From the NCBI RefSeq assembly GCF_030028105.1, contig NC_092383.1:87191921-87255920 (forward strand): DNA of 64,000 nt, in the 5' to 3' direction. Each line of letters begins with the position of its first letter. Position 1 is the first letter of the stretch. Shown here piece after piece: positions 24,882-62,807 of this stretch. The position numbers and the translations under genes were made by a program. The notes beneath the pieces are model-generated. The model was not told the DNA's origin. It ran no database searches and saw only the letters and a list, made by a program, of their open reading frames with translations. Source of the stretch: Mobula birostris. Taxonomy: Eukaryota.

Positions 24882-24921
24882 ATGCTGTGGACTTTGCTTG
24901 TTTTGATTGGTTTCCTCCCCT
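24882..24921 (+). CDS. Candidate leader (signal peptide) exon of the Ig receptor: MLWTLLVLIGFLP
   Basis: ACAAAATG context with A at -3, 13 hydrophobic codons, and a phase-1 end that matches the V exon. The donor GTGATT is non-optimal. It lies in non-repeat sequence 1.4 kb upstream of V1. Confidence 0.55.
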
Positions 24922-25029
24922 GTGATTGACAGACAGCTCTGGACATTTGCATAATCAATGTTGGTTTGAGAGTTGTACACCGTTCCCACAACAATGCTTG
25001 AATACCCGTCGACACTAAAGACGTCGGAA

Positions 25030-25420
25030 ACTGGACTTGGGAATACACTCCTGGAGGAATTCAACGGGTCAAGCAGCACCTGTCAAGGGGAGGGGAATGT
25101 CAATAGTTTGGATCGAGACCCTGCATCAAGTGTGAGTGGAGAATGAGATAAAGTAAATAGGACAGGAAGAGGTGTGAGACTGGGTCCATTAGGTGGTTCG
25201 GGACCGAGGAGAGGTGAAACACAACATGCAAATGGAATGGGGAAGAAAAGGTGTGGCGTTTGGAGGGGGGTGAGAGGCTGAAACAGATCAGGAGGAAAGG
25301 GGAATAGTGCAGGTGAGGGAAGAATGCATCCAGATGGAGAAACCCCCTTGGGGCTGTTAAGTGGAAACATCAGGTCTTCCATTGCTGGAATCTGATCCTC
25401 CTCTGCAGGGATCACTATGA
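25030..25420 (-). mobile_element. Degenerate PLE 3' end in intron 1
   Basis: Reverse complement has a pyrimidine tract, a decayed TTGATGCAGGGTCTCGATCCAAA hammerhead-like motif and the terminal repeat. Confidence 0.6.
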
Positions 25421-26299
25421 CAATTGACGTTATTGTCTTGAAATCATTGTCTTTCCTGGGCCATTTCAGTGGGGCAATCAGTAAAGAACATTACTGGAAC
25501 TGGAATCCAAGGTAAACCAGGGTGGGTAGGGATGAAAGGTTTCTCTCCTTAAAGGCCATTCCAATCCAGATGGGATTCTGACAATCTGGCAAGTCATCAT
25601 TATCATTATCAATATGTGGTTTTTAGTTCCAGAAATAATTAATAGATTGGATCTAAACACTCAATACATTTTTAAAGAATTTAATGTCAAACTAGATTTC
25701 TATATACTAAAGTAACAACCTTTGTTGCAGCACCTTCTAAATGGACATACAAGTATTTGACAGGTACAATATATATTATTTCCATTGGAACCAAAAGGCA
25801 CAGTTTCGGACATTATAAGGGGTTTCTTTGTGCAGTTTATTAATTTGTCTGTAAGTCGGGAGGAAGTCAGGACATTGGCCTCAAGAGATCCTATCAACCC
25901 GATCTGAATCCTAGAGTTCCCTGGAATCTGAGACACAGACGCATCCCAAATGAAACAGCTGGGATCTTTGTCGACATTTCAAAGGCTGACATATTCTGAA
26001 GTAACTGAAAGTTCAACACTGCGCTGTCCCTCAATACTGCACTGGAAGGTCAGCCCTGGGTTTCTGCTCAGGACTCCAGAGTGGGAAGTGAACCCACAAT
26101 GTACTGACACAGGGTAGAGAGCACTGACACAGCTGACACAGTAACAGCACTGACTGCACTTCACACCAAAATCATTGACTGTGGTGTCATGGACCACTCT
26201 CTGGGCATGACCTGCACCTGTTTCCACCGTCATGTTCAAAAATGTTTGTTTGCATTGAGTTGTTCCCTTCAAATCTGAAAATGCCTTCCTCAGTTTCAG

Positions 26300-26614
26300 G
26301 TGCATTGTGGGCAGAGAAATATGTAAGAGGAGTTGTGGGAAGAGCGATCACAATCGATTGTTACTATGAAGCAAGGTACAGCTCACACACAAAGTATTGG
26401 TGCCGTGGATGGACTCGTCGCTGTTCAGTTTTAGTGGAAACAAATGGGCAACACAGACGGAGTAGACGAGTGTCAATCACAGATAATTTGAAACAGAAAA
26501 TATTTACTGTTACTATGGAGCATCTTCGCTCTAGGGATACAGGATGGTACAGCTGTGCGATTACAACAGCAGTCGCTGATCCGAGATTTAATGTACATCT
26601 ACAAGTATCTGATG
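26300..26614 (+). CDS. Ig V-type exon 1, CD300/pIgR/MDIR-like
   Basis: TTTCAG acceptor, GTAGGT donor, 315 nt, phase 1-1, open. Motifs ITIDCYY, TKYWCR, extra C-C' Cys (RRCS), FTVTM..L...DTGWYSC. Confidence 0.93.
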
Positions 26615-27029
26615 GTAGGTTTTTCAGTGATTAACTTTGTGCCTTCTATAAAGTAAGTGTCTCTTGATCTTTGCCCAGACATTGTCCATCCTTCACTATC
26701 TCTGCATTCATACCAGTGCCAAATGTTCCCTTCTGTGTGGTAGGCCACTGAACCCAGTCACAAATTAATTATCTCCTGAAAGCCACCAAACAGATATCTC
26801 ACATTACTGTGGAATTATAAGACCAGTTTTCAACAGGAGATTTAATTTACATCTGCAAGTAAAGTAAGTGTCTCATGATCTTCGTCCCCACCCTGTCCAT
26901 CCTTCACTATTTCTGCATTTACATCAATGCCACATGCTTCCGTCACTAAATCCAGTCACAATATCATTTTCTCCAGAAAGACAGCAAACATATGACAGAT
27001 ATCTCACATTACTGTCTTTAAACAAGCAG

Positions 27030-27580
27030 GAGCAACTTTATTTGGTACCTCCCACACCTAATAAAGTGGCCACTGATTGGATGTTCCTGGTCTTCTGCTT
27101 CTGTGTCCCATCCACTTCCAGGTTCGATATGTTGTATTTTCAGATGCTCTTCAGCACACCACTGTCATAACACACGGTTATTTGAATTCCTGTCACCTTT
27201 CTGTCAGCTTGAACCAGTCAGGCCATTCTGTCATTAACAAGGCATTTTTGTTCATAGAATTGCTGCTCTCTGTATGTTTTATTTTATGTTGTTCACACCA
27301 TTCTCTGTAAACTCTCAAGACAGATGTATGTGAAAATCCCAGGAGATCAGTATGTTCTGAGATTCTCAAACTACCCCATGTGGCCCCATCAATTATTTCA
27401 TGGTCAAAGTCACTTAGATCACATTTCTTCCTCATTCTGATGTTTGGCCTGAACAACAACCAAACCTCTTGACCATGTCTGCAGGCATTTATGGACTGTG
27501 TTGCTGCCATGTGATTGACTAATTAGGTATGTGCATTAACAAGCAGCTGAACAGGTGTATCTACTAAAGTGGCAGAAGAC
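27030..27580 (-). mobile_element. Tc1-like non-autonomous element
   Basis: MRKKCDLSDFDHEII...LLGFSHTSVLRVYREWC (Tc1 paired-like HTH). Degenerate CACTTTATTAGGTACACCT-type TIRs at both ends. Confidence 0.8.
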
Positions 27581-27634
27581 TGTTGGATTTTCAGATGTTC
27601 ATTCAGTGTCTGAATGTTTAATTCTTTCCCACAG

Positions 27635-27955
27635 AACATGTTTCTGTTCCAGTGATTCAATATCAGTCACCAGCATATGTGTCACGTCTCGGGGGCTCAG
27701 TGTCAGTGTCCTGTGAGTCTTTCCAGGGATCCCTTCCCATTCAGTACCGATGGTATGAAAAATCCTCACATGGTGATCCAAAGATCTCAGATACCAATGA
27801 ACTGGCTCTACATTGTCAATCCTTCAACCAGCAGCACCATCAATATTATTGCAGTGCCTCGAATCGGCTTGGAGCAAGATCCAGTGCGATAGTTAAAGTG
27901 ACAGTCTTCAACAACGGAGAGATCTGCAGTTATGTGACAGAAATCAATGGCACCA
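27635..27955 (+). CDS. Ig C2-type exon 1 with a Cys-containing C-terminal extension
   Basis: CCCACAG acceptor, GTAAGT donor, 321 nt, phase 1-1, open. Motifs GGSVSVSCES..GSLPIQYRWY and YYCSASNRLG. Confidence 0.92.
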
Positions 27956-28129
27956 GTAAGTTCTAATTTCAAGGGAGGATACATTTAAATATTTCTTTTT
28001 GTTACTCTGTTACTGCTGCTCTTATACTTATAGTGAGGATAAGGAATTTCTTTACATTTGTAAAAGCTACACATTGCAGAGACCATGGGGTAGAAATAAA
28101 GTGTAGTGAACAGTTATGTCCGTCACTTA

Positions 28130-28512
28130 GTCATGGAGATGTGGACCACCTCTTACATAGTTGGACTTGCACATCCAGTTGAAAGCATTCCATTCATACT
28201 TCTGCCTTCTGCTTTGAAAAGGCTGGAATAGGTGTTGAGTTATGAGACAGTGATACTCATAAAAATCAAAGGAAGGACAGGCCTGCAGATAGATTGTCAC
28301 CAGGACCAGATGGACTGCACCCCACCGTTCTGAAAGACTTTGTGGAGGTATATGTGGTGAACTTTCAATAAGAATTAGACTCTGGAATTTTCCCAAGGAC
28401 TGGAAATTTGGAAGTGTCACTCCACACCTTAAGCAGGAAAGGAGGCAAAAGAAAGGAAATTATAGACCCATCAGTGGTTGGGAAGATGTTGGAGTCCATT
28501 ATTAAGAACAAG
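28130..28512 (+). mobile_element. CR1 ORF2 fragment split by an insertion (resumes at 29841)
   Basis: KQERRQKKGNYRP and GKMLESIIKN pieces; continues KVLGYLEGFDKI after 29861. Confidence 0.7.
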
Positions 28513-29840
28513 CTTTTGCTTCGCGAAAATCCATGAAAGCAGAGGGGTGGCCCAAAGAATGAGTGACTGTTAAACATTAGAACACCAAAGCCCCCCCAGC
28601 TCTCCCCTCCCATACACAAGCAGTAGCAAGGCAATGACCCCCCCCCCCCGCCTCACCACACCAGCTAAGAAAGCACCGGCACCCTCCACCGAGCACTCAA
28701 GCGTGCAGCAAAGTATCAATAAAGCCATAGACTTGCAGTACCTCAAAGACTACTCGTTCACCCAGTTATTCAATATACTACAGGGTCTCTCTCTCCCTAA
28801 TAAGAGAAAAAGAGGTGTCTCTTTTTCTCAGCGAGAGGGAGCATAAAACAAACAACTCATTGATTTATAATGTTAAATGGCTGTTGCATTGCTTTTTCCG
28901 AGCTCCATGCCCCGAGGGTTGGTCCCAGGGCTCAGGTCTCAGGACACCCAGCTGGCAGCTAACCCACTGCTCCCGATGTTCCATGTTCCATGTTCTCCAG
29001 TGACACCTCAGTCAGGGGCACCGGTCGAGAATCAGCCTGTCCCCAGAGCCACAAAAATCCGGCACCCTGAATGCACGCTTGTCTTCCAGGCCGCGTCCTT
29101 GGGGTATTAAGGCCAGTGGTGAGGCCCTGATAGCAGGTTACATTCCCGCAAATATCTGGTCAGAGTCACAGTCTTCCAAAGAACTTTGATAAAGAAAAAA
29201 AACATATATCAAAAACAGAAATAGAGCCATTCTCAAAGATGCAAGCAAAGTGGTAATGTTGCAGCTATATAGGACCCTGGTCAGACCCCACTTGGAGTAC
29301 TGTGCTCGTTTCTGGTCACCTCACTGCAGGAAGGATGTGGAAACTATAGAAAGGGTGTAGAGGAGATTTACAAGGATGTTGCCTGGATTGGGGAGCATGC
29401 CTTATGAGAATAGGTTGAGTGAACTCAGTCTTTTCTCCTTGGAGCGACGGAGGATGAGAGGTGACCTGATAGAGGTGTATAAGATGATGAGAGGCATTGA
29501 TCGTGTGGATAGCCAGAGGCTTTTGCCCAGGGCTGAAATGGCTAACACGAGAGGGCACAGTTTTAAGTTTCTTGGAAGTAGGTACAGAAGCGATGTCAGG
29601 GATAAGTCTCTTACGCAGAGAGTGGTGAGTGCGTGGAATGGGCTGCTGGCGACAGTGGTGGATAGGGTTTTTTAAGAGACTCCTGGATAGGTACATGTCA
29701 CCCGAGGTAACTTCTAAAATATGTACATGTTCAGCACCTCATTGTGGGCCAAAGGGCCTGTATTGTGCTGTACGTTTTCTATGTTTCCATGTTTCAAAGC
29801 AGTTGCCATTTTGCACCATCTTGACTTTGCTCCACCCTCC
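28513..29840 (-). mobile_element. Unclassified non-autonomous element with a 21-bp TSD, containing a CR1 insert
   Basis: GAGTCCATTATTAAGAACAAG at 28492-28512 and 29841-29861. Non-coding; CAAGATGG motif near the presumed 5' end. Confidence 0.6.
29220..29810 (+). mobile_element. CR1 3' fragment
   Basis: LVRPHLEYC and LFSLERRRMRGDLIEVYKMMRG, plus a GGGCC-AAGGGCCTG hairpin and TTCTATG-type tail. Confidence 0.9.
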
Positions 29841-29959
29841 GAGTCCATTATTAAGAACAAGGTTTTGGGGTACTTGGAGGGATTTGATAAAATATGTTTT
29901 CCATATCGGGAAATCTTGTCTGAAAAACCAACCTCAGAAAGCAAGGGTGTTCCTTTCTT

Positions 29960-30153
29960 TTATTTATTTACTGATAGAGTGCAGAGTAGGTCCTTACAGC
30001 CCTTCAAGCCACACAGGCCCAGCAACCCTCGACAAACCTGATTAACTACATCCTAATCACAGGACAATCAACAAAGACCAATTAATCTTTCCGATATGTC
30101 TGTGGACTGTGGGAGGAAACGGGACCACCCAGGGGAAACACCACGCATTCCAC
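29960..30153 (-). mobile_element. V-SINE (HE1-like) fragment
   Basis: Minus strand GGTCCCGTTTCCTCCCACAGTCCACAGAC matches the V-SINE central domain. Confidence 0.7.
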
Positions 30154-31089
30154 ATGTCCAACATGCTGATTCCGTTCATTAGAACGGAGATGAGGAGTTT
30201 ATTTAGCTAGAGGGCGTTGAATCTGTGGAATTAATTACCACAGACGGCTTTTGAGGCTGACCAATTGGGTTTATTGAAAATGGAGCATGATATTTTTGTG
30301 CTTAGTAATGGCATCAAAGATTACGGGAAGAAGTCAGGAGAATGGGATTGAGTGGGATAATAACTCAACCATGATGGAATGGTGGGACAGACTCTATGAG
30401 CAAAATGGTTTAATTCTGCTCCTGTGTCTTATGGTCCCATTGTCTTATGGTCATCACTATCTTTAGAATTTCATGAACAGTCCAAGTAAATCACTGACTA
30501 CTTAAACTGAGTTTCAGGTTGCTGATTAAAATAAAGGGAACCCATACCTTCTATTTGAGTCTATGCACAGATATGAGCAAGTCTGCCACATTTCATGGCT
30601 GTGAACAGGATAATAAGCTTTCAAAATCCATGTAAAACAGTATAGGAATGTCAGTCCTATGCGAAGGATTGGCAAGTCTTCAGCTTACTGCTCCATGAGG
30701 TTTACCTGTCTCTGTGCTGAACTGAGCTGGTGGCCTGTAATTAACGGCTCCTTAATTGTCTGCAGTGATGACTGGCTTTATGGCTGTGGACTTACATTTG
30801 TGAATTTCAGTTCTGAATTTATTTACTTACTTTTATTCTTTGCATGATTTATTTTTTTTACTACACATTGTGCATTTGACAGTGTTTTTTAATGGATTCT
30901 ATAGTTTTTTTTGTTTGGTGGCTGCTTATAAAGAGAAAATCTGAAGGCTGTATATAGTATTCATACTTGGGCATTAAATATACTTTGAATTTTGAAATTG
31001 AACTGTAATATGATTGGCTGTGATCCAATAAGCTGTCACACCAATGCAATGAAATAGAATTCTGATTTTAACCTTTCAAAAGTATGTTA

Positions 31090-31467
31090 CAGTTTAGAGA
31101 GGATGCAGCAAAGTCATAGAGATATAGGCTATGGAAACAGGTGCTTCAGCTGAAATCGTCCATGCTGACCACAGTGTCTTCCTGAGTTTCTCCCATTTCC
31201 TCACAATTGGCTGGTATCCTTCTAGAGCTTTCCTGTCCATGAACTTGTCCTAATCTGTTTGAAATATTGTTTGTGTACCCACCTCTAGCTCTTCCTCTGG
31301 CAGCCTTTTCCACGTACACACTGCACTGTTCTGTGTGGAAAACACTGCCCCTCCAAGAATCTCCCTTCTCACCTTAACCGGATGCTATCTGGTTTCCAAC
31401 TCCCCTACTCTGGGATAAAGACTGTGATTATCCACCATACCTTTGCCCCTCTTAATTTGTAAACCTC
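31090..31467 (-). mobile_element. CR1 3' fragment split by L1 (resumes at 36381-36730)
   Basis: AAACCTCT | ATAAGGTCACC joins into continuous CR1 sequence across the L1. Confidence 0.7.
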
Positions 31468-34400
31468 TTTCTTTGTTTCCTTTCCAATCTTTTTATCCAT
31501 TTCAAAATTATAAACGTAACATAGTATTGATACAAAATTATTGGGATTATATTGTTGTAATTAACATATTTAAATATAAACCCAGTTGACGCACGGGTAT
31601 TAAATCCCCCAATCATAGAAGATACATATATAATATACAAAAGAAATTTTTTAAATATAACATGAAAAAAGAAAAAATATATATATACTCCAAAAGAAAA
31701 ACTAACCAAAACAATACTAACCAACTAAACTAAAAAAAAAAGAAAAGAAAGACATGGGCTGTTATGTAACATCAAAAAAAAAAGAATCATTAGTGTTGTT
31801 GACTCCGCTCCTTTCGACATATATTAAAAAGAAATAGAATAGGTTTGGAAAAGGTCAAATTACATCATACGAAAGTATTGAATAAATGGCCTCCAAGTCT
31901 TTTCGAATTTAATAGAGGGATCACGAATAACACTTATAATTTTTTCTAAGTTTCAACAGAGCATAGTTTGAGAGAACCAATGAAATGTGATGGGAGGATT
32001 GATCTCTTTCCCATTCAGCAAATGGATCTTCTAGCCATTAATGTAAGAAATGCAATCAACCGACGAGCTGAAGAGGTTAAATGAATTGATTCTATCATTG
32101 GTAACCCAAAAATTGCAGTAATAGGGTAAGGTTGTAAATCAATATTCAGAACAGTTGAAATAATATCAAAATATTATTTTTTCAAAAAAGGACATGACCA
32201 AAACATATGAGTTAAAGAAGCTATCTCAGAGTGACGTCTATCACATACAGGATTTATATGAGAGTAATAATGAGCTAATTTATCCTTAGACATATGAGCC
32301 CTATGCACTACTTTAAACTGTATCAATGCATATTTAGCACATATAGAGGATGAGTTAACTAATTGAAGAATTTTTTTCCAATTTTTAAATTGGTAAAGTA
32401 ATCATAAGTTCCCTTTCCCAATCAGTCTTAACTTTATTAGATATGTCTGGAAGTATTTTCATTATCATCTCATAAATAGTTGCTATTACACCTTTCTGAA
32501 AAGTATTTAAATCTAATTTTTTTTCCAAAATATCCATTGAATATAAATTTGGGAAGGTAGGAAGAGCAGTATTTAAAAATTTTCTGATCTGTAAATATCT
32601 AAAAAAAATGGGATCTAGGCAAATTATATTTATTAGATAATTGTTCAAAGGACATGAAACAATTATCCAAAAATAGATCACAAAATCATACTATACCTTT
32701 AGTTTTCCAAGCCAAATAGGCTTGATCCATGATTGAGGGTTGAAAGAAGAAATTAGATATAATAGGCTTGATAGCATTGATCCAACCTATCAATGATAGA
32801 GACATTGGTGACCATTTAGTAAACAGAAGTTTAATCTGATCAACTAAAGGTGAAAAAAAAGCCTTAAACAAATCCTTATGCTTTTTTGTAGTTTTAACCC
32901 CTAAATATGTAAAAAAAAAAGTTGGTAACTAATTTAAATAGTAAACATCCATAAATGGGAACCTGAATATTTTGGAGAAATAGTTCACTCTTATTAAGGT
33001 TCAATCTGTAACCAGAAAAATTACTAAACTGAGCCAACAAGGATAAAACAGTGGGAATGGACTTCTCAGGATTAGAAATGTGTAATAACAAATCATCTGT
33101 AAATAATGATAACTTATGTACTTCATTTGCACGGGTAATAGCAAAAATGTTAGGTAAGTCTCGGATAGCAATTGCTAAGGGTTCAAGGGCAATATCAAAT
33201 AATAACGGAGTAAGAGGACATCCCTGCCTAGTACTCCGAGATAAGCGGAAAAAGGAAGATCTTTGATTGTTAGTAAAAACCGAAGCTACAGGGGTATGAT
33301 ATATCAATTTTAATCCAAGATATAAATATCGAACTAAAATTAAATTTCTCAAGCACACTAAATAAATATGGCCATTCAATTCTGTCAAAAGCTTTCTCAG
33401 TATCTAATGAAATAACACATTCTGGAGTACTAAATGCATGAGTATAAACAATACTCATTAACCTCCTAATATTAAAAGTTGAATAACGATTTTTAATAAA
33501 TCCAGTTTGGTCCACAGAGATAATTTGAGGTAATACCTTCTCCAAACTAGTTGCTAATACTTTAAAAAAATTTTAGAATCTACATTCAGGAGAGATATCG
33601 GTCTGTATGATGTACAATCAGTAGGATCTTTATTCTTTTTAAGAATTAAAGAAATAGAGCTCCATAAAATGATTGTGGTAATTTACCCAATCTAATTGCT
33701 TCTTTAAAACTCTAGACAACCAAGGAGAAAGAGTAGAAGAAAAAAACATAAAAAATTCCACTGTAAAACCATCTGGACCAGGTGCTTTGCCAGAATTCAT
33801 TCAGGAAATAACAGCTATTATTTCTTCATCCCTAATAAGAATTTCTATTGTTAAACATTCTTCGGGTGATAATTTCAGAAAATTCAATTTCTTTAAAAAG
33901 TCATGAGTGTTGGGATCATGAAGAAATTCAGAATGATATTGAAGTATAACATTTCTGAGAAGATTTGTTTACCTCATCATGATTAACTGTCAAGGTGTCA
34001 TCATGTTTGCGAATCTTGATAGTTTGATGTTTAACCGAAGCTGTTTTCAATTGATTAGCTAATAATCAATTCACGATGCTGAGAATGTTCTACGAGTCTG
34101 TGGTGGCCAGTGCTATTATGTTTGCTGTTGTGTGCTGGGGCAGCAGGCTGAGGGTAGCAGACACCAACAGAATCAACAACCTCATTCGTAAGGCCAGTGA
34201 TGTTGTAGGGATGGAACTGGACTCTCTCACGGTGGTGTCTGAAAAGAGGATGCTGTCCAAGTTGCATGCCATCTTGGACAATGTCTCCCATCCACTACAT
34301 AATGGACTGCTTGGGCACAGGAGTACATTCAGCCAGAGACTCATTCCGCCGAGATGCAACACTGAGTGTCATAGGAAGTCATTCCTGCCTGTGGCCATCA

Positions 34401-36380
34401 AACTTTACAACTCCTCCCTTGGAGGGTCAGACACCCTGAGCCAATAGGGTGGTCCTGGACTTATTTCCTGGCATAATTTACATATGATTATTTAATTATT
34501 TATGGTTTTCTATGGCTATATTTATACTCTGTTCTTGGTTGGTGCAACTGTAACGAAACCAAATTTCTCTCGGGATCAATAAAGTATGACTATGACTATG
34601 ACTATGACTAATTTACCCAATATGTCACTATGTGTATAAAGCTCACTTCCAGTTTTCATTAATTGATTTTCAATCAAGGATGTTAATAATAAGCTACGTT
34701 CCACTTGAAGTTAGACTCTCTGTTTATAAAGCTCCTTACTAGGAGCAATAGATTATTTCTTATCAATTTCTTTAATTTTATCGACTAACAGAAGTGTTTC
34801 ATTCTTAATACGTTTTTTCAAACTAACAGAATAAGAAATAATCTGCCCACGGATATATGATTTAAAAGTGTCCCATACTGTCCCGTTAGAGACTTCTTCC
34901 ATAATATTAGCTGAAAAGAAGAGATCAATCTGTTCCTTCATAAACTTAACAGAATCCGGGTCTTGAAGCAGATTAGAATTAAATCGCCATTGTCTAATAC
35001 TGGGAGAAGTATCTATTAACTTGATAGAAAGTTTCAATGGAGCATGATCAGAAATGGCAGTAATGTCATAATTACAGTCAATTACAGAAGGAATTAAACG
35101 AGAATCAATAAAAAAAGTAGTGAATTCGAGAATGAGAATGATAAAAATGTGAGAAAAATGAAGACTCTTTATCCTTAGGGTATAAAAATTCTCCAAATTT
35201 CTGAAATTCCAGAGTCAATCATAAAAGAGTTGATAAGTGTAGCTGACTTATTCGGTAAAGCCTGCCTAGATATGGATCTATCCATGAGGGGATTCAAACA
35301 GCAATTAAAATCACCACCCATTATCAACGTATACTCATTTAAATTAGGAAAAGAAGTGAATAGATGCTTTAAAATTCGGGATAAACCATGTTTGGAGCAT
35401 AAACATTGACTGTAGCAAATTTGTTATTAAAAAGTTACCCAGTAATTAACAAAAATCTACCACCTGGGTCTGAAACAATGTCTTGATGAGTAAAGGTAAT
35501 TGAGGAATCTATGAAAATTGAAACTCCTTGCACTTTGGCCTGAGAGTTCGAGTGATACGTCTAGTCCTTCGAAAACCTAAAGTAACGTTGATTATCCTCT
35601 TTCATCACATGAGTTTCTTGAGCACAAATAATATGAGCATTCAGTTTTTGGAATACTTTAAAAATCTTCTTCCATTTAATTGGATGGTTTAAACTATTTG
35701 TATTCCAAGAGAGAAAATTAATAAATCTGAGCCATAATTTAAAGTCAACCCTTTGGTATATAAAGAGTTAACCATAATGTAAACTCATGAAATCAGAAGA
35801 GGAATAAACATTCAGAGAGACTGGAAGTTGCGACACTGCAGACATCTTTGTAATTCTGAATCAGCTCAACAGAAGAGCCGAATAATAAATGCAAAAAAAC
35901 CCCACCCTCCACCCATAAAGTCCCGAAACTAAGTGAGAAAGGGCTAGAAGGAGAACTAAGAACTAATACTAAATCTACCCCCATTTCTCCAGAAGGCAAC
36001 TCCAAAGCTATATGTTACAAAGAAAACACCCCAAAATCCAAAAAGAAAAATTAAACACTGTACTATAATAATCTTCATATTGTGATTTCTAAAATGAATG
36101 AAAAAAAAGTGTCGATATAAATTATTCATCAATTACAAACATAAATAATTGAAAATGGAACTTCAAAAAGAAGACAGGAATTATAGTGAGAAGGAACATG
36201 AAAAGATGACACAGTAAAAAGAACAACAGATAATATAAAGATAGGGAAACAGACCGCCATCTTAATTATACAAAGCAAAAAAAAAAACAAGATATTGCTC
36301 CATACAATGGAAATTCACTATCAAATCGGTAGTAATAATGTCAGAAATCAACTAATTAGAAGTTAACAAAATAAGGTCAC
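31468..36380 (-). mobile_element. 5'-truncated L1 (inter-ORF region, ORF2, 3' UTR), decayed; present only in copy 1
   Basis: DQTGFIKNRYS, ISLDTEKAFDRIEW, TRQGCPLTPLLF, LSLFTDDLL, AISDHAPL. A-rich tail at 31468. Confidence 0.92.
34073..34608 (+). mobile_element. Rex1/Babar 3' fragment with a (TATGAC)n tail, nested in L1
   Basis: MLRMFYESVVASAIMFAVVCWG...HRKSFLPVAIKLYN; ends AATAAAG(TATGAC)4. Confidence 0.88.
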
Positions 36381-39284: not shown

Positions 39285-39420
39285 ATAGCGTGGATTATGC
39301 CCTTCAAGCATTGCTGCCCAGCAATGCCCAGATTTAGCCCTAGCCTAATCATGAGACAATTTACAGTGATAAATTAAGCTACCAACCGGTAGGTCTTTGG
39401 ACTGTGTAATGAAACTGGAA
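39285..39420 (-). mobile_element. V-SINE fragment (paralogue at 61385-61525)
   Basis: Minus strand CAGTCCAAAGACCTACC motif and an (ATTG)n-derived tail. Confidence 0.6.
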
Positions 39421-48792: not shown

Positions 48793-48850
48793 AGAGTGTT
48801 TGATTTTCAGATGATCATTCAGTGTCTGATTGTTTAATACTTTCCTACAG

Positions 48851-52150: not shown

Positions 52151-52319
52151 CAAAGCAATTGCCATTTTGCACCATCTTGACTTTGCTCCACCCTCCGAGT
52201 CCATTATTAAGAACAAGGTTTTGGGGTACTTGGAGGGATTTGATAAAATCTGGTTTCCATATGGGGAAATCTTGCCTGAAAAATCATCCTCAGAAAGCAA
52301 GGGTGTTCCTTTCTTTTAT

Positions 52320-52510
52320 TTATTTACTGATAGAGTGCAGAGTAGGTCCTTCCGGCCCTTCAAGCCACACAGGCCCAGCAACCCTCGACAAACTTGATTA
52401 ACTATATCCTCATCACAGGACAATCTACAAAGACCAGTTAATCTTTCCAAGTTGTCTGTGGACTGTGGGAGGAAATGGGACCACCCAGGGGAAACACCAC
52501 GCATTCCACA
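52320..52510 (-). mobile_element. V-SINE fragment, paralogue of 29960-30153
   Basis: Same V-domain motif at the same position. Confidence 0.7.
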
Positions 52511-53378
52511 TGTACAACGTACTGACTCCGTTCATTAGAATGGAGATGAGGAGGAGTTTATTTAGCCAGAGGGTGTTGAATCTGTGGAGTTAATTACCAC
52601 AGACGGCTTTTGAGGCCAACTCATTGGGTTTATTGAAAACGGAGCACGATAGTTTTGTGTTTAGTAAAGGCATCAAAGATTATGGGGAGAAATCAGGAGA
52701 ATGGGATTGAGTGGGATAATAACTCAACCTTGATGGAATGATGGGGCAGACTCTATGGCAAAGTGGCTTAATTCTGCTCCTGTGTCTTATGGTCCCATTG
52801 TCTTATGGCATCACTATCTTTAGAATTTCATGAACAGTCCAAGTGAATCATTGACTACTTAAACTGAGATTCAGGTTGCTGATTAAAATACCTCGCTCAT
52901 TTTGAGATACGGGAAGGGAACCCATACCTTCTATTTGAGTCTATGTACAGATATGAACAAGGCTGCCGCATTTCATGGCTGTGAATAGGATAATAAGCTT
53001 TCAAAATTCATGTAAAACAGTATAGGAATGTCAGTCCTATGCGAAGGATGGGCAAGTCTTCAGTTTGCTGCTCCACGAGGCTTACCTGTCTCTGTGCTGA
53101 ACTGAGCTGGTGACTTGTAATTAACGGCTCCTTAACTGGCTGCAGTGATGACTGGCTTTATGGCTGTGGACTCACATTTGTGAATTTCAGTTCCAAATTT
53201 ATTTACTTACTTCTGTTCTTTGCATGATTTATGTTTTTACTACACATTGTGTGTTTGACAGTGTTTTTGAAAGGATTCTATAGTTTTTTTTGTTTCACGG
53301 CTGCTTGTAAAGAGAAAATCTGAAGGCTGTATATAGTATTCATAATTGGGCATTAAATGTACTTTGAATTTTGAAATT

Positions 53379-54186
53379 CTAGTCTCTTTTCCATTGCTGG
53401 AGAAATGGTCCAGCATTCACTTCCATAAGTCAGGATGGAATAAATGTAGCACTGCAGTATTCTGTTTTTAGTGTACGCGCTCACCTTTCTGTCTGTTAAT
53501 ACGGTCTTCATTTTTTGGAAAGCTTCTTTCACCATTGCTATTCTGTATTTGATCTCTGTGTCGCACCTGCCATTACTTGTTATTAGGCTGCCAAGATATC
53601 TGAATTTGTTGACTTGTTTGATGTTTGTATTTCCGATCTTGATCACACATTATGGGATGTTTGTCTTTCTGGAGATGACCATGCTTTCTGTCGTCTTGGT
53701 GTTGATTGAGAGGCCTCTGCGATTACTTTCTGCTGCCACTATAGTGAGTAGTTCTTGAAGTTTTGTTTCTGAGTCAGCTATCAGTACAATGTCATCAGCA
53801 AATCTGATTGTAATATATCAGCATATATTATGTCCTCCAATTGTGAATTCTGTGATGTTTCTGATACTTCTCAAGATATTTTCACTATACAGGTTGAGTA
53901 AGTCTGGCAAAAGGACACAACCGTGCCTGACTCCTCTCATGATATTCACATACCCACTCACTTCTCCTATTCTGATGGATGCTGTCTGGTCCCAGTATAA
54001 GTTTCTTAAGAAACGTATATCTTTCCCGTCTATGTCAAGGTCTTGAAGCATTTCCAGAAGATCTTGCTGTCTGATAGCGTCAAAAGCTTTTGTATAGTCG
54101 ATGATACTTAGGGAGATGTCTTTCTGTACCTGGATGGCTCGTTCACATATCATCCGTAGAATGAAAATTGCATTTCTGGTTCCAGT
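53379..54186 (-). mobile_element. RTE-clade LINE internal fragment; present only in copy 2
   Basis: TRNAIFILRMICER, IDYTKAFD, GVRHGCVL, FRYLGSLITSNG, YGSECWT. Truncated at both ends. Confidence 0.88.
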
Positions 54187-55275
54187 GTTTTCTGTACCTT
54201 CTCTAACTTAATCACGCACTTCCTCTGGAACTGCACAGGGTAGACAAGGTGAGACCTTGTCAACATCTTTTATAGTTGTAACATGCCATTCCAACTGTAC
54301 TTAATATCACCATCCAAAGAAGGCAAACCGGTCATACTCCTTGTTCAACACTTTGTCCACCTGTGTTGCCACTTTCAGGGAACAATGTAGTTGCACACCT
54401 CATTCCCTACAGTGTGAGTTGTGTCCTTGTTTAATTTCTCAGAATGCCTGAGTTCAATTCCATCACTTGTTCCATTGGCCACTTTCCTAGTTCAAAATTC
54501 AAAGTAATTTTATTACCAAACTATGTATACTATAAACAATCGAGAGATTCGTCTTTTTGCAGATACCCACAAAACAAAGTCACACAATAGAATCCACAAC
54601 AAACCACACACTACAAAGACTGACAAACATCTAATGTGCAAAAGAACATGAATGGTGCAAATAATAAGAACATGTAAACAATGAATACATGGAGCATGAG
54701 ACGCGGAGTCCCTGAAAGTGAGTCCGCAGCTGCAGAGTCCGTTCACACTGAGATGAGTGAAGCCAATTCAGGAGCCCGATAGCTGCAGATCACCATGTGC
54801 TGACAAACCTGGTGGCGTGGGCCCCTAGACTCCAGCACCTCCCACCTGATGGTCATAGCGAGAAGAGAGGGAGACGGGTCAAATGCAGGCAGATGGAACA
54901 GGCTCAACTGGGGGTCGTTGCTGGCACAGAGTAATGGGGCTGAACACTGGATCATTTTCCAGGTCCCTTTGTAAACTTCGACAACTCTTTCCACCGTCCA
55001 CCGCACTACAGTGTCATCCACGCATTATTAATCATGTCACCTACAATATTATTACAAACTATTCATATCAATGACAAATAACCATGGTTAATAAATAACA
55101 GCACTGATCCCAGTGTCACACCACTGATGATAAAGTCTGACGTTGTCAGAAAACCCACTCCTCACTATCACAATCTGACTGCTTCCATCATCAAAAAACT
55201 CAGTCATATTGTTAGAGAGAAGATTTCCCATGCAAAAAATAATGTTGACTATCCCAAATCAGATCTTGCCTTTTC

Positions 55276-58200
55276 TTTTTTAATTTTTTATTTTTATTGA
55301 AGGAATGACACAATACAGAATATATAATGAATTACATTTTGCTCCATTTTGCTTTAATATCGTACCCCCAAAACAAACCTGCCCCCACCCGCCCTCCCCG
55401 AACATATCACGGCAACTAATATATTTACAACACAACAATTCGCAAATACAAGTACGGACATTTCACAACCATACCCCCACAGTACTTCAAGACAACGGCT
55501 CACACACATCTGCAACATGTCAGATGATCCAAAATACACTCATATTTACAATTCATCAACCACCCTGTGAGGTAAATTATAAGCGTGTTAAATGGGAGGC
55601 AACTTCCCAAGTACAATCAAATGCCCTCAACTGGTAGGTAATTCCTTAAGACTCCCAAAATATGATAAGAAAGGTCCCCATTTCGAATAGAACTTTTTCA
55701 CAGACCCCCTCAAAGTGAATTTAATCTTTTCTAATTTCAGAAAAAACATTACATCTTCTAACCAAGCAGCAGCAGTTGGGGGAGTGGCAGATTTCCAAAC
55801 CAGCAAAATTCTCCTACGGGCCAATAGCGATGTAAATGCAATGATATCCGACTGGCTTGCATTTAAACCCAAATCATCATCTGCCACACCAAATACAGCT
55901 ATAAGCGGGCAAGGTCTCAGTGTCACCCCCAAAACCTCACTGATAATTTTAAAAACCAGTGCCCAATAGTCATCAAGCCGAGGGCATGACCAAAATGCAT
56001 GTACTAAACCAGCCGGAGAGAAGGAACACCTGTCACAGCCAGCGTCTGTCCCAGGGTGTATGTCTGCAAGTCTGGCTTTACTTAAATGTACCCTGTGTAA
56101 AACTTCAAATTGTATGAGCCCCAGTCTAGCACATGATGATGAGAAATGAACCCTATTCAATACTTTTGCCCAATATTCCTCCGCCAGATCCATACCGAGG
56201 TCATCCTCCCACCTACTCTTAGTTTGGTTTAGATCTTGAACTCCCAAAGACATCAGCTGAGAGTATAGTTCAGAGATCAGCCCTTTATTGTTGAAGCTAA
56301 GAGTGAGTTTTTCCCATAACATAGCAGGTGGTAGATCAGGAAAAGAGGGAAATTTTTCCTTGACAAAGTGGCGAATCTGCAGGTATTTAAAAATATGATT
56401 ATGCGGAAGGCCATACTTACCGCGCAGGTTATCAAAACTGTCAAATATGTTATCAGTATACAAATCCTTAATGCGCATAAGACCATTCAAACCCCATTGT
56501 CTGAAAGCTGAATCGAATGTGGAGGGAAGAAATAAATGGTTTTTATGAATGGGGCCCAAAACTGAAGCTGATATGAACTTACAGTGGCAGCGAAATTGAT
56601 TAAAAATTTTGAGGATGGAGAGCACGACCAGATTAGATGTGAATTGAGAGGATTTCAGTGGTAAGGAAGAATACACCAAAGCTGGGAGAGACGAGGAGTG
56701 GCAAGACCGTGACTCAAGCAGGCACCAGATTATATCTGGTCGGTGGAGCCAAAATAATACTTTTTGAATGTTCGATGCCCTGTAATAATGAATACAGCTG
56801 GGAAGACCCATTCCACCTACGTCATGACCTCTTTGGAGAGTGTGCTTATTAACCTTTGGGACCTTATTTTCCCAAATAAAGGAGGTTATAGCTTGGTCGA
56901 CTGATTTAAAAAATAACTTAGGTAAGAAAACTGGCAAACACTGAAACAAATAAAGAAATCTAGGAAGTATAGTCATTTTCACTGACTGAATTCTCCCAGC
57001 TATAGTAAGGGGTAAACTGTGCCATCTCTCGGGGGTAAACTGTGCCATCTCTCGAAATCAGCCTTCATTTGGCTAACCTGAGGCCTGTAGTTAGAACATA
57101 GGACATAGAATAGTACAGCACAGTACAGGCCCTTCAGCCCACAATGTTGTGCCGACTCTCAAACCCTGCCTCCCATATAAGCCCCCACCTTAAATTTCTC
57201 CATATACCTGTCTAGCAGTCTCTTAAACTTCACTAGTTAGCTTCAATCAGAGATGTAAAAGAGTGAGTAATATGTATTCCTAGGTATACAAAACCATCTT
57301 GAGATAAAGGAAAAGGCAAAGATTCCTGTCGGATCTGTAGGGCCAAGTTATTAATGGGAAAGCATTTGCTTTTTTGAAAGTTCAGTTTATAGCCAGAGAA
57401 AGCTCCAAATTGACCTAATAATAACACAATAGCAGGACTACCACCTACAGGGTCGCTAACATAAAGTAAGAGGTCATCAGCATATAGGGGTACATGGTGT
57501 TCCATGTCTGCTTTTCTAACACCTTGAAATAATATAGTTGACTTAAGTGCAATAGAAAGAAGCTCAATTGCAATTGCAAAAAGAAGAGGGGACAGTGGGC
57601 AGCCTTGGCGAGTGCCACGTGTTAATGGGAAATAGTCAGATCGAAAATAATTTCTCTGTATACATGCTAAAGGCGAGTGATATAATAGCTTAACCCAAGC
57701 TATAAATATGCTACCAAATCCAAACTTCTCCAAAACATTAAACAAGTATACCCACTTCAATCTATCAAACGCCTTCTCCGCGTCCAAGGAGATAACAACC
57801 TCTGGACTTGGAGAATCACTGGGTGAATAAACCACATCAGCCAGTGGACGGATATTAAAAAAAGAATAGCAATTTTTAATAAGACCTGTTTGATCGTCTG
57901 AAATTATCTTGGGAAGGGGACGTTCTAAACGGCATGCAAGCACTTTAGCCAAAATTTTCACATCTACATTCAAAAGTGAGATGGGGTGATATGATCCACA
58001 TTGAGTCGGGTCCTTGTCCTTTTTAAGAAGTAGTGAAATAGCTGCCTGTGAAAGAGCAGGGGGTAAGGAGCCATTCTCCAAAGATTCCTGAAACACTTCT
58101 AGAAGGACCGGTATGAGCTTATCCTTAAATTTCTTATAAAATTTTATTGGATAACCATCAGGACCTGGGGACTTACCACTCTGCATAGCCATAATGGCAT

Positions 58201-59567
58201 TATTAATCTCTTCCTGCCCAAGAGCCCGATCTAGGTTCTCCACCTCCTCTGGTTCAAGAGTTGGTACTTCCAAATTATCTAAAAGACGCTCCATATTTGT
58301 TTTATCTGAGGGGAACTCTGAGGCATACAGAGAGGAATAAAAAGTTGCAAAGATGTTATTAATCTCTTTTGGATTGCTTGTCAAGTTTTGGTGCATGTCT
58401 CTTATCTGGGGAATAAGTCGTGATGCAGCTTGACATTTCAACTGATGAGCCATAAACCGGCTCGCCTTGTCACCATATTCATAATCAAGGCCACGTGTCT
58501 TAAGAATTAATTGTTCTGATAGGTTTGTGGATAGAAGATTAAACTTCACTTGCAAATCAACCAGGCTTTTATATAATTCCGCAGTGGGTGCCTCAGAGGA
58601 TTTTCTATCCAGGTCCAAAATAGATTGCAATAACAATTGCATTTCCTTCCTACACTCTTTATTGGCATGTGAAGTATAAGATATTATTTGACTCCTCAAG
58701 TAAGCTTTTAAAGTTTCCCAAAGTAAAGAGTATGATACCGACTCAGTTTTGTTAGTCTCGAAGAATGTGTCAATGTTAGCCGATGTATAACTACAAAATT
58801 TCTCATTAGAAAGCAAAGGAGGGTTAAGTCTCCACAGAGGCCATTTTCTAACGGTTAATGGAAAACATAGGTCCAGTTTCATGGGCGAGTGATCAGATAT
58901 AAGTACAGCAGTGTATTCAATTTGTCTAATCATTGGTATCAAGGAGTTATCTGTAAAGAAATAGTCTAGCCTGGAATAGGAATGGTGAACATGATAAAAG
59001 AAAGAGAATTGCCTAACTGATGGATTCAAAAATCTCCGAGGATCCATATAACCATTTTGTTGCATAAACATCGAGAAGGCCTTTGCCATACCAGAAAATG
59101 TTCCCCTAGGGCAAGACCTATCAAGCAGTGGGTCAATAGCACAGTTCAAATCTCTGGAAAAGATTAGCTTATGTGTATTCAGGTTAGGTATTAATGACAA
59201 AACCTTATTTGCAAATTGGACATCGTCCCAATAAGGAGCATAAACATTTACCAAAATAACAGGTATCTGAAACAGAGAGCCAGAGACTATAATAAAAGCG
59301 ACCATTAGGGTCACTGATTACATCAGATGGTGTGAACTGCATTCTATTGGTGATTAATATTGCCACTCCCCTAGACCTACTATTAAATCTGGAATGAAAA
59401 ACCTGACTAATCCAAGCTTTACGAAGTCTATTATGGTCCTCCACTCTTAAATGTGTCTCTTGTAGAAATAGTATATCTGCTTTCAATTGTTTCAGATAAG
59501 AGAAAACTTTTGCTCTTTTAACCGGACCATTCAGCCCCTTTACATTCCAAGAAATAAACCTCACTAA
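55276..59567 (-). mobile_element. L1 ORF2 and 3' UTR, 5'-truncated at the ORF2 start, relatively intact; present only in copy 2
   Basis: RFISWNVKGLNG, QETHL, GTRQGCPLSP, LYADDLL, CSFSPAGLVHAFWSC; poly-T at 55276. A 23-bp tandem duplication at 57009-57054 shifts the frame. Confidence 0.95.
57095..57233 (-). mobile_element. Short CR1 3' end with a 7-bp TSD, inside L1
   Basis: TAGTTAG at 57088-57094 and 57234-57240; CR1 terminal hairpin and tail. Confidence 0.8.
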
Positions 59568-60167
59568 CACAATCTGACTGCTTCCATCATCAAAAAACTC
59601 AGTTGTATTTTTAGAGAGAAGATTTCCTATGCACAAAATCATGTTGATGATCCCAAATCAGATCTTGCCTTTTCAAATTCAGGTAGATCCTGTCTCACAC
59701 AATCACCTCCAGTAAGTTACCCACCACTGATCTTATCCTCACCTGCCTGGAATGGGACTGGATCAGTAATCTATTGACTCAGAAATATGGAAACACACCC
59801 AGACAGTAGTGGGCAGTGACAATGATGACTCCAATCAAATAAAAATCATTACTTGTGAAAAGCTGGGAGCATGAGATGAGGGACGATGCTGTTGTCTTCT
59901 CAGTCAGTGTGGAATTCAATTACACCAACTGACAGTGTGGCAGATTCCTTAGAACACAGTGACAGCTTTAAATGAAACATCTTGAATTTTAATCTATTCT
60001 TCATATTGTGTTTTTTTGTTCTCCATCAGATCCAAAGTAACAATGATTTTGTTCTCCTTTACACTTGTGTACAGGAACTGACATGAAACAATCTTGAAAC
60101 TTGAATCTGCTTGTGTAAATTTGATTTTACCTGTCCATTTTCTGAAGAACGTCTCCCTCAGTTTCAG

Positions 60168-60482
60168 GTGCTTTATGGGCAGAAGATAAAGTAAGAGGAG
60201 TTGTGGGAAGAGCGGTCACAATCGATTGTCACTATGCCCCAATGTACCGTTCACACACAAAGTATTTGTGCCGCATATGGGATCACCAATGCACATCGTT
60301 AGTGAATACAAGTGGACAAAGTGAGCAGTATGGAAGAACGACAATCAGAGATAACACATCCCTGGGAATATTTACTGTTACTATGGAGAATCTTGTCTCT
60401 CGAGATAGAGGACTTTACAGATGCGGAATTACAACATCTGGCAATCATCCAGCCTTTGACATTTATGTAGTAGTTTCTGATG
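60168..60482 (+). CDS. Ig V-type exon 3 (duplicate of exon V2)
   Basis: TTTCAG acceptor, GTAGGT donor, 315 nt, open; 15 differences from V2. Confidence 0.92.
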
Positions 60483-62489
60483 GTAGGTTTCTCGTATATA
60501 GATTTGATGTCACCACTGAAATGTCTGATTCCTGTTTTCCCTCGTCGGAGTTCGAGCAGCACGGATATCCTGAGGCTCCGCAGTGGTGCAGAGTCCTGTG
60601 GGTTCTGGTCAAGGAACGAGGAAACCCCTCTCAGGATGCTCTCATTGAGTGCAGAGTCTGACCCACTGATGGGACACCGATTTCCAATGGGAGGCTCATC
60701 GCATTTTCCTGCCTCTGAACTGTATGAAATGTCACCCTGTCAGAGGTTTGAATTCAGACCAAACTTAATAACCTGATATTAACAGGTCGATGAGAAACAA
60801 GTGTTTCTCATGGTGTAAATACCTTGAAATTCATAAAAAGGGAATCAGTTCCAGAGCTAAACAGACTTCATTCAATTCTCCCACAGCAGGCTTTCCCACT
60901 ACCCATCCCTGCTTCATGGACCAGTCACTCCCCCCTCTACCACATGCTGACTCTCTTTGTCTCTGTTAATGTGCTCCAGGAATCCACTCCCCAGAACCCA
61001 CTGACCATCTACTTCCCAGCAGCCAGCCTCTACACCCAGCCCATTCCTGGTGAGAAATAGAGCAATGGAATTAGAGAGAACATGGGACACAATCCCTGCA
61101 GTCACCACCCTCAGTGTAAAAAAAAACGTGTCACAAATGTCCTTTAAAATTTCCCCTGATCACCTTAAGACTTTGCTCACTATTATTTGATATTTCAACC
61201 CTGGGAAAAAGAGATTCTGACTATCTTCCCTATCTCTGACTTCTATAAATTTACAAACTTCTATCAGGTCTCCCGTCAGCCTCCTATGCTCGAGTGAAAA
61301 CAAACCAAGTTTTTCCAACTCTGTCCATGGCTAATACACTCCAATCCAGGTAACTATGTATTGATTGATTGACTGATTGATTGAGATATAGCGTGGATTA
61401 TGCCCTTCAAGCATTGCCGCCCAGCAATGCCCAGATTTAGCCCTAGCCTAATCATGAGACAATTTACAGTGATAAATTAACATACCAACTGGTAGGTCTT
61501 TGGACTGTGCAACGAAACTGGAAATTAAATTCCAGGTGAAGTCAATCTTCCCTAATGTATGAGGAGTATTTGAAGGCACTGGGCCTGTACTCGTTGGTGT
61601 TTAGAAGAATGAGGAGGATCTCATGGAAAGCTATCGAGCATTGAAAAGCCCAGTGGATGTGAAGAGGAGGTTTCCTACAGTGCGAGCATCGAGGACTAAA
61701 GAGGGCACAGTCATAGAATAAAAGTATGTCCTTGAAAAGAGAGATGAGGGGAGGATTTCTTTAGCCAAAAGCTGGTGAATCTGTGGAATGCATTGCCACA
61801 AGTATCTGTGGAGACCAAATCATTGGGTATATTTAAAGCAGAGGGTGATTCTTAAGGGCTTCAAAAGTTACAAAGAGAAGGTATGAGAATAGATGAAGAA
61901 GGATGATAAATCAGCCATGATTGAATGGTGGAACAGACTCAATGGACAGAATGGCCTAATTCTGCTCCTATATCTTATGGTCTTATGGCCTATGGTCTTT
62001 CTACTTCTCCAGTCACATATGATTCCTTTTTGGATTCATATCGATACTGATACTCATGGGTTCCCTTGCTGCTATAGGTCACTGAAACCAATCACAATTA
62101 TACTCTGTCCCAAAAGTCACCATTCATCTTGTACATATCTGACAATTTCCCGTTTTCACATGATGGGGGAAGTTTTCCAGGACACATACAAATGTTGCCA
62201 TTCCAAAGTCAACCTGTTAGGTGCCACTGAACACTGCCTCCTTGCTGCTGAGAGAGATTGTAACTCTGATTTTCACACTGACACATACTCAGTGTCATCA
62301 CTGCTGTCCTGATCTGGAGTCCTGTGATAATGTCAGACATGGCAGTTCAGGCGGATGGGGGGGACGCAGGGACACAGGGAGGTAGATGAGCTGCCGAGAT
62401 TTCAAACTGGTGGGTCCTGGTTGAGATACAGAACTGCGGAAATCAACAGTGTGTTTGATTTTCAGATGTTCACTGATTCTTTTCCACAG

Positions 62490-62807
62490 AACCTGTGTCT
62501 GTTCCTTTGCTTCAATTTTCACCAACAAATGACTCAAGTTGTGGGGACTCCGTGTCAGTGTCCTGTGAGTCTGTCCATGGATCCCTTCCCATTCAGTACT
62601 CATGGTATGAAAAGATCCCATCTGTGGTTTCAAAGATCTCTGATACCAATAAACTGGATCTCCATTGTCAGTCTATAAAATACAAAAATCATCTGTATTA
62701 TTGTAAAGTCTCAAATACTAAAGGAGAAAAGTCCAGTGAAGTGGTCAATGTGTCCATCTCCAACAGTGTCAGCACCTGCAGAAATGTGATTGAAGTCAAC
62801 AGCATGG
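62490..62807 (+). CDS. Ig C2-type exon 3, divergent subtype
   Basis: TCCACAG acceptor, GTAAGT donor, 318 nt, phase 1-1, open. SVSCESVHGSLPIQYSWY, LYYCKVSN. Confidence 0.92.

Follow-up and report, generated by a model that had tools for sequence, protein, structure and literature searches.

The MDIRs of skates reportedly have between one and six ectodomains, which fall into four domain subfamilies. As the original prediction for the present locus held, they combine V and C2 modules. MDIR5 is arranged as V-C2-V-C2-TM and MDIR3 as V-V-C2-V-C2-TM. MDIR2, MDIR3 and MDIR5, which are compared here, come from the clearnose skate (described by Cannon et al. 2006, Immunogenetics 58:362, as cited in PMC3031540), those of MDIR3 and MDIR5 being GenBank entries.

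The window (the whole analysed stretch of 64,000 nucleotides from Mobula birostris) contains one gene of interest, and positions 24882-62807 hold its first 38 kb, i.e., the leader and the complete ectodomain. This locus is very probably the 5' part of one gene for a type-I membrane receptor that belongs to the elasmobranch MDIR family, and genes of this kind are labelled 'polymeric immunoglobulin receptor-like' in RefSeq. A comparison with the skate proteins, which had been proposed as a check, gave 54-71% identity per domain to MDIR2, MDIR3 and MDIR5, and the similarity extends over several domains at 59% identity, the alignment covering 427 aa for MDIR3 (P0176) and 439 aa for MDIR5 (P0202), two proteins that the family search had retrieved. 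Like the window gene, the MDIRs carry pIgR/CD300-like V domains and FcR-like C2 domains in variable numbers. In the window gene, the V domains are of the pIgR/CD300/TREM/NKp44 type, with an additional pair of cysteines inside the domain, and they occur with C2/I-type domains related to FcR homologs in one chain, the joining of the domains being based on homolog models. Skates represent another batoid lineage, and their domains form clades of their own; the window gene differs from the skate MDIRs in having three strict V-C2 pairs and a six-domain state that comes from a lineage-specific duplication.

The suggestion that this domain arrangement had not yet been described has to be withdrawn, since RefSeq models of related elasmobranchs (Mobula, Hypanus, Pristis, Rhinoraja, Leucoraja, Heptranchias, Mustelus and Chiloscyllium) already show the alternating six-domain layout, and (V-C2)x3-TM models are present in at least seven elasmobranch species, including rays, skates and sharks. 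The locus adds one more gene to a known receptor family and is no new kind of receptor.

Exons, splice joints and domain types

Six Ig exons alternating between V and C2 types had been predicted, and when each exon was run against the window with tblastn, exactly three V and three C2 copies came up and no others (Table 1, where the exons are named V1, C1, V2, C2, V3 and C3 in their order). AG acceptors and GT donors (GTAGGT, GTAAGT, GTGATT) are present at all exons, the phase is 1-1 throughout, and splicing on the plus strand gives a stop-free frame consisting of a leader and V-C2-V-C2-V-C2, which agrees with the predicted open frames and canonical splice sites; the spliced length, given before as about 648 aa, is corrected to 654 aa. 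In the homologous proteins the V acceptor lies 6 nt upstream of the one nearest to the Ig core (CAG|TTTCAG), and with this upstream acceptor each C2-V joint reads '...ISGALWAE...' and the leader joint 'FLPFSGALWAEK'. The C3 exon ends with '...EVNSM|G', in agreement with 'EVNSMGPIHFCEN...' of P0152, a RefSeq Gnomon model of 948 aa from Mobula hypostoma.

Table 1. Positions of exons, duplication units and other features in the window.
Feature	Positions	Strand	Remarks
Leader (signal peptide) exon	24882..24921	+	MLWTLLVLIGFLP plus 1 nt; donor T|GTGATT, phase 1; sole leader-like exon (ATG, hydrophobic, phase-1 GT) matched by family proteins
Possible alternative upstream (5') exon	23234..23428	+	A-rich, donor G|GTAAAT; 97% identity to P0152 residues 88-152; candidate in this genome
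V1 exon, N-terminal-type V domain	26294..26614	+	Pfam V-set, E 3.7e-12; PDB matches to pIgR/CD300f; 91% to P0152 domain 1; KYWC and extra C-C' Cys pair
C1 exon, internal-type C2 domain, FcR-like	27635..27955	+	Pfam Ig_3, Ig_C17orf99; FCRL5, E 2.9e-36; 98% to P0152 domain 2
V2 exon, internal-type V domain (KYLC)	38040..38360	+	Pfam V-set, E 4e-8; 95% nt identity to V3; 91% to P0152 domain 3
C2 exon, internal-type C2 domain, duplicate of C1	48851..49171	+	90% nt and 85% aa identity to C1; 89% to P0152 domain 4
V3 exon, internal-type V domain, duplicate of V2	60162..60482	+	Pfam V-set, E 3e-9; 95% to P0152 domain 5
C3 exon, membrane-proximal-type C2 domain	62490..62807	+	Pfam Ig_2, E 1.5e-6; 96% to P0152 domain 6; last exon visible in the window
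Tandem duplication unit A	26745..47949	+	C1, V2 and later TE insertions; colinear self-blastn blocks, 88-93% to 47950-62134
Tandem duplication unit B	47950..62134	+	C2 exon, V3 and later TE insertions
C1 donor read-through	27956..28100	+	...GTSKF-stop, then AATAAA at 28095

In Pfam, the three V exons are recognised as V-set (E 4e-12 to 4e-8) and the three C2-type exons as Ig_3/Ig_2/Ig_C17orf99. The best PDB matches of the V domain are pIgR, CD300f, CD300a, NKp44 and TREM, with pIgR and CD300f/CLM-1 matched by V1 at E 1e-19 for single-domain chains, and C1 matches FCRL5 in an alignment over six stretches. The CD300/pIgR signature that was ascribed to all V domains holds for the extra cysteine pair, present in each of the three, but KYWC is found in V1 alone, V2 and V3 having KYLC. 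The domain trees give two V subtypes and two C2 subtypes, in the order Va-Ca-Vb-Ca-Vb-Cb.

The leader had been noted as the only one, and nine family proteins match its region (24846-24920, 62-79% identity in tblastn) and no other place in the window. Further leader exons (ATG, hydrophobic core, phase-1 GT) were scanned for across the window, and homolog support was found for 24882 alone; the alignment of Hypanus P0155 to the spliced frame begins at P0155 residue 1 and includes the leader. Because the M. hypostoma model P0152 skips a leader of this type and starts from upstream exons, with the counterpart of 23234..23428 in the leader's place, the true 5' end of the gene is uncertain. One of the upstream exons of P0152 matches a frameshifted repeat-like stretch in the window, with no Pfam match, and we read this stretch as LINE-1 ORF1.

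One gene or several

One long MDIR-like receptor, and not three genes, is also what the closest relatives point to. P0152 has the six domains in identical order, each of them 89-98% identical, and the identity over 644 aa is 93%; all six are open in it and are followed by a TM (at residue 820) and a tail (V-C2-V-C2-V-C2-TM), the gene spanning 54.6 kb in the M. hypostoma genome. The six-domain model of Hypanus sabinus, P0155, shows 76% identity from end to end. In the trees, domains 1, 2, 5 and 6 of the window gene are sister to the P0152 domains of the same position (V3 to domain 5 with support 99/89 in the V tree, C3 to domain 6 with support 99/93 in the C tree), domain 4 is not sister to P0152 domain 4 (C tree), and the divergence between the two genes is uneven among exons (C1 98%, C2 exon 89%). 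The homologous proteins used as support are Gnomon predictions, and when proteins derived from transcripts were sought across the C1-V2 joint, nothing but genome-annotation models came back, and no transcript or junction read of this gene.

It is very unlikely that these exons belong to two or three separate tandem V-C2 genes with a transcript each, since V2 and V3 have no leader exon, no second copy of the promoter/leader region was found at either of them (window self-comparison, tblastn), and the intervals C1-to-V2 and C2-to-V3 are TE-filled duplicates of each other. As noted before, there is no TM exon between the pairs, and neither the plus-strand TM scan nor tblastn of about 130 family proteins, tails included, against the window gave a TM or tail exon after C1 or C2; moreover, in the models of the closest relatives the six domains form one protein. 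What speaks for separate genes is that two-domain V-C2 members, with a TM or soluble (e.g., P0204, P0205, P0242 and P0243), are common in related species, and that the read-through of the C1 donor meets the SKF-stop, with AATAAA 140 nt downstream. A V1-C1 product is therefore conceivable, and the read-through could, judging from the sequence, end a soluble V1-C1 isoform; however, unit B has not kept this pair of signals, having lost the stop and lacking an AATAAA in the vicinity, and no family proteins ending in ...SKF were found.

Two hydrophobic TM-like matches, at 47768 and 61953, were rejected as TM exons because they are repeat sequence that recurs at about 30187 and 52543, and because they are positioned in V-to-C2 introns. 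The matches of family proteins outside the exons, at 29382, 51738, 36803, 54523 and 9665, contain stops and either derive from TEs or represent parts of mis-modelled tails on the minus strand.

A single gene may also act as an exon-skipping cassette, so that the main products would be shorter (V-C2, V-C2-V-C2, or without one V) and the six-domain form minor, which we regard as a possible but not the probable outcome. All exons are phase symmetric, and RefSeq isoforms or relatives without single domains are present, namely H. sabinus P0157 (V-C-V-C-C), M. birostris P0004 (C-C) and M. hypostoma P0006 (V-C-C), although these are predictions and some are perhaps mis-models. Such skipping is compatible with the single-gene explanation and not opposed to it.

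Tandem duplication and constraint

It is shown here that the six-domain form arose from a V-C2-V-C2 ancestor by a clean tandem duplication of the C2+V exon pair. In self-blastn the end of unit A adjoins the start of unit B exactly (47949/47950). The duplicated ancestral segment was about 9-10 kb long, with both breakpoints in V-to-C2 introns, and since every exon is of phase 1-1, the C2+V pair was added in frame. The V-C2-V-C2-TM layout of Hemitrygon akajei P0005 (597 aa, 'polymeric immunoglobulin receptor-like'), which has four ectodomains as opposed to six in the window gene and 68-84% identity to it per domain, equals the inferred state before the duplication. The domain trees suggest that a similar expansion of the internal pair, or homogenisation, took place separately in Mobula, Hypanus, skates and sharks. 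The locus is a clean genomic example of how ectodomain length changes through one unequal tandem duplication with breakpoints in introns of the same phase and the frame undisturbed, and it is useful for annotating such rapidly evolving clusters and for work on paired inhibitory and activating receptors of early jawed vertebrates.

The open frames had been taken as a sign of selection, and this is borne out clearly for the older divergence (V1 vs. V2/V3, C3 vs. C1/C2), over which the frames stayed open with dN/dS of 0.57-0.68 and the chance of a stop-free frame under the substitutions is about 0.02 per exon. For the young duplicates the support for selection is weak: units A and B diverge by 7.2% in exons and 8.7% in introns (Fisher p = 0.21, not significant), the young duplicate exons have 0 indels vs. 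2.5 expected (P = 0.085), and between duplicates the C2 pair has a dN/dS of 0.43 and the V pair (V2/V3) one of 0.79. The exon and intron divergences, which do not differ significantly, and the V2/V3 dN/dS, together with the large TE insertions in the introns, the skipping of the leader in the sister-species model and the fact that none of the matches was recognised as a protein of this genome, would fit a decaying or non-expressed copy, whose exons are still open only because of the youth of the duplication and whose 5' or unseen 3' end is defective. We consider such a copy unlikely, as all seven exons are open with splice sites and ATG intact, the four young exons would have escaped both stops and indels with a joint probability of only about 0.01, the frames were kept open over the old divergence, and the M. 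hypostoma ortholog has six open domains.

Predicted membrane part and relation to known receptors

The TM of P0152 is uncharged and its tail has three ITIM-like motifs (VVYTDL, IVYVDV and VTYADI), while the ITIM-bearing tail of H. akajei P0005 is almost identical to it. The TM and ITIM tail of P0152 have no counterpart inside the window; judging from this 93%-identical protein, a stalk, an uncharged TM and a tail with three ITIM-like motifs are predicted just beyond base 64000. If a P0152-like tail is present, the product would be an inhibitory leukocyte receptor, in which ligand binding by the V domains may lead to phosphorylation of tail tyrosines and then to recruitment of an SH2 phosphatase. 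Since the TM and tail exons lie outside the window, the inhibitory function is read from the ortholog. In related genomes many paralogs per species are found on one chromosome, and in the M. birostris relative P0004 the TM contains an Arg.

That many-domain V-bearing MDIRs take the functional place of pIgR in cartilaginous fish, with the YxxL/V/I of the ortholog's tail as endocytosis/sorting signals and not ITIMs, and with V domains that bind J-chain-containing polymeric IgM, appears highly improbable, given that C2 domains alternate with the V domains, that there are dozens of paralogs, and that paired relatives have TM segments of the activating type.

Regarding the mammalian families, pIgR and CD300 have in common with the window V domains the V fold signature with a second disulfide, the domains of FCRL5 resemble the C2-type domains of the window, and CD300a, CD300f and the FCRLs have ITIM-like tail motifs, as does the ortholog P0152. 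However, the ectodomain of pIgR has V-type domains and no others (mammals have five, teleosts two), whereas every second domain of the window gene is C2-type; CD300/CMRF35-like receptors carry just one, stalked V domain, as opposed to six Ig domains; and FCRL proteins have only C2-type domains, unlike the window gene with its three V-set domains. None of pIgR, CD300 and FCRL alternates V and C2.

Exon set and gene structure

With 42% G+C, CpG observed/expected of 0.41 and no N runs, the window is vertebrate-like DNA. Comparison of the six candidate exons with the whole window (tblastn) showed exactly three copies of each type, V and C2, which alternate strictly and all lie on the forward strand, and no further V- or C2-like copies elsewhere in it. 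Boundaries were set from the window sequence plus homologous proteins, and every exon of the set has an AG acceptor, a GT donor and phase 1-1, as the original prediction had stated. The earlier length of about 648 aa has to be corrected, since the seven exons splice into a 654-aa open frame. Homologs do not splice at the V acceptor nearest the Ig core but at one 6 nt further upstream, so that the C2-V joints read 'ISGALWAE' and the leader is followed by 'FLPFSGALWAEK'.

Features of the receptor locus, positions within the window
Feature	Positions	Strand	Basis or remarks
Unit A	26745-47949	+	self-comparison
Unit B	47950-62134	+	self-comparison
Leader exon L	24882-24921	+	sequence, homologs
V1 exon	26294-26614	+	sequence, homologs
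C1 exon	27635-27955	+	sequence, homologs
V2 exon	38040-38360	+	sequence, homologs
C2 exon (fourth Ig exon)	48851-49171	+	sequence, homologs
V3 exon	60162-60482	+	sequence, homologs
C3 exon	62490-62807	+	sequence, homologs
Ty3/gypsy-type LTR retrotransposon	39630-47369		V2-C2 intron, unit A only
its PNMA/gag-like ORF	41222-42367		
its RT-RNaseH ORF	43032-44678		
its further ORF	45810-46556		no Pfam match
its flanking direct repeats	39630-39740, 47259-47369		111 nt, 90% identical
LINE element	55627-59642	-	C2-V3 intron, unit B only; RVT_1

Pfam assigns V-set to all three V exons and Ig_3/Ig_2/Ig_C17orf99 to all three C2-type exons. Among solved structures, V1 is nearest to pIgR domains and CD300f/CLM-1, with CD300a, NKp44 and TREM next, while C1 is nearest to the repeated domains of FCRL5. 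The CD300/pIgR signature predicted for the V domains stands as regards the second Cys pair, kept in all three, but KYWC is found in V1 only (KYLC in V2 and V3).

The leader exon is single, as nine family proteins match 24846-24920 and nowhere else in the window; self-comparison gave no second copy of the promoter/leader region, and a hydrophobic-exon scan with family-tail tblastn gave no TM or cytoplasmic exon between the V-C2 pairs. The frame is also 93% identical over 644 aa to six-domain P0152 (a 948-aa Mobula hypostoma RefSeq model), and on these sequence comparisons the proposed single long receptor, one MDIR-like (modular domain immune-type receptor) gene, is well supported.

Hydrophobic TM-exon candidates between the pairs were rejected as parts of a dispersed repeat, and family-tail matches in the window as TE-derived, stop-containing or minus-strand pieces. 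A short repeat with a hydrophobic ORF ('...NGLILLLYLMVLWP...') mimics a TM exon at 30187-30452, 47557-47797, 52543-52794 and 61741-61997; these copies are 70-92% identical and are found in introns of either kind, V-to-C2 and C2-to-V.

The 64-kb window lacks stalk, TM and tail exons (nothing matched in tblastn with P0152 residues 794-948), so an inhibitory function is proposed from the ortholog P0152. A search across the C1-V2 joint found no transcript support, returning genome-annotation models only.

The P0152 model does not include the 24882 leader exon; its residues 88-152 match 23234-23428 (97% identity) and residues 1-93 match 18362-18639 (75-80%), frameshifted in the window. The latter stretch ('KLRVFFDTGQVIYNNASEATEDLKN...', no Pfam match) reads as LINE-1 ORF1-like, and the P0152 N-terminus probably represents translation of a 5' exon derived from a TE. 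Because P0152 has upstream exons in place of the 24882 leader, the true 5' end is uncertain; the 24882 exon itself is the signal peptide typical of the family. If the C1 donor is read through, the frame ends in GTSKF-stop and an AATAAA follows at 28095; unit B has not kept this pair, and no family proteins with such an ending were found.

Tandem duplication of a C2-V exon pair

Units A and B are the two copies of a tandem segmental duplication, colinear and 88-93% identical once younger TE insertions are removed; unit B adjoins the end of unit A exactly, and each holds a single C2-type exon with a single V exon after it. This accounts for the closeness of C1 to the C2 exon (85% aa identity) and of V2 to V3 (89%), whereas for V1 and C3 the identity to the counterpart domains is only 52-58%. 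Given the duplication pattern and these identities, the ancestral layout was V1-C-V-C3. Both breakpoints lie within V-to-C2 introns and, since all exons are phase 1-1, the C2+V pair was gained in frame, a neat mechanistic detail in a finding of modest overall interest.

A relic of a V-exon 3' end ('...RRFNLHLQVK') occurs twice: at 26784-26897, some 170 nt past V1, and at 48007-48102, at the beginning of unit B. The relic belongs to a local ~210-nt tandem repeat (26649-26810 vs 26860-27015), just within the duplication breakpoint at 26745. The LTR retrotransposon is restricted to unit A and is thus younger than the duplication, and the LINE (open frames of 145, 693 and 473 aa) looks young.

Selection and domain trees

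Between units A and B, 7.2% of exon and 8.7% of non-coding sites differ (Fisher p = 0.21), no indel falls in the exons, where 2.5 would be expected (P = 0.085), and dN/dS equals 0.43 for C1/C2 and 0.79 for V2/V3. Under random substitution at the observed numbers, the chance of staying stop-free is ~0.2 for the C2-type pair and ~0.45 for the V pair, which makes the young duplicates only moderately informative on selection (joint chance ~0.01, indels included). The older divergence, with a stop-free chance of ~0.02 per exon and dN/dS of 0.57-0.68, shows long-term constraint of the sort typical for fast-evolving immune receptors; the suggestion that the open frames reflect selection is thus borne out at this depth but not by the exon versus non-coding comparison of the young units.

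In domain-wise trees, V domains divide into N-terminal and internal types and C2 domains into internal and membrane-proximal types. Window domains 1, 2, 5 and 6 each form a pair, with starred support, with the P0152 domain of the same number, so the Mobula-lineage duplication is older than the split of the window genome and M. hypostoma. Internal V domains pair within their own protein in Hypanus P0155, Rhinoraja P0002 and Leucoraja P0164, and V domains 1, 3 and 5 of Heptranchias P0171 are identical; this pattern points either to independent duplications or to concerted evolution.

Exon identity to P0152, the closest protein, is very uneven (V1 to C3, domains 1-6: 91, 98, 91, 89, 95 and 96%), and window domain 4 (48851-49171) and P0152 domain 4 are not sisters in the tree; both findings hint that paralogs have contributed sequence by gene conversion, or that the change has been diversifying.

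Related receptors

An exhaustive profile-free search with C1 returned many elasmobranch proteins in which the C1-type C2 domain occurs two to six times, and mapping the six window exons onto them gave alternating V/C2 architectures; the best matches are all from myliobatiform rays, Mobula being nearest. P0152, annotated as 'polymeric immunoglobulin receptor-like', has a gene that spans 54.6 kb in the M. hypostoma genome. Its ectodomain is likewise V-C2-V-C2-V-C2 and leads through a stalk to an uncharged TM (residue 820), and the tail contains the motifs VVYTDL, IVYVDV and VTYADI. Hypanus sabinus P0155 is also (V-C2)x3-TM (76% identity to the window frame, aligned from residue 1, leader included), while Hemitrygon akajei P0005 (597 aa) is V-C2-V-C2-TM with a tail as in P0152, and matches the proposed pre-duplication layout. 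The alternating six-domain layout, which the original prediction held to be possibly undescribed, is therefore not new, being annotated in several elasmobranch genomes, and the MDIR family was reportedly described in 2006.

In P0152 and P0005 a near-identical membrane-proximal C2 domain sits on an uncharged TM and an ITIM tail, whereas P0004 (M. birostris) carries it on an Arg-containing TM with a short tail, as in paired activating and inhibitory receptors.

The skate MDIRs, cited as GenBank entries and described as CD300/TREM/pIgR-like (PMC3031540), belong to the same family as the window gene: MDIR3 is V-V-C2-V-C2-TM, MDIR5 V-C2-V-C2-TM and MDIR2 V-C2-TM, with identities to the window of 54-71% per domain and 59% over 427-439 aa.
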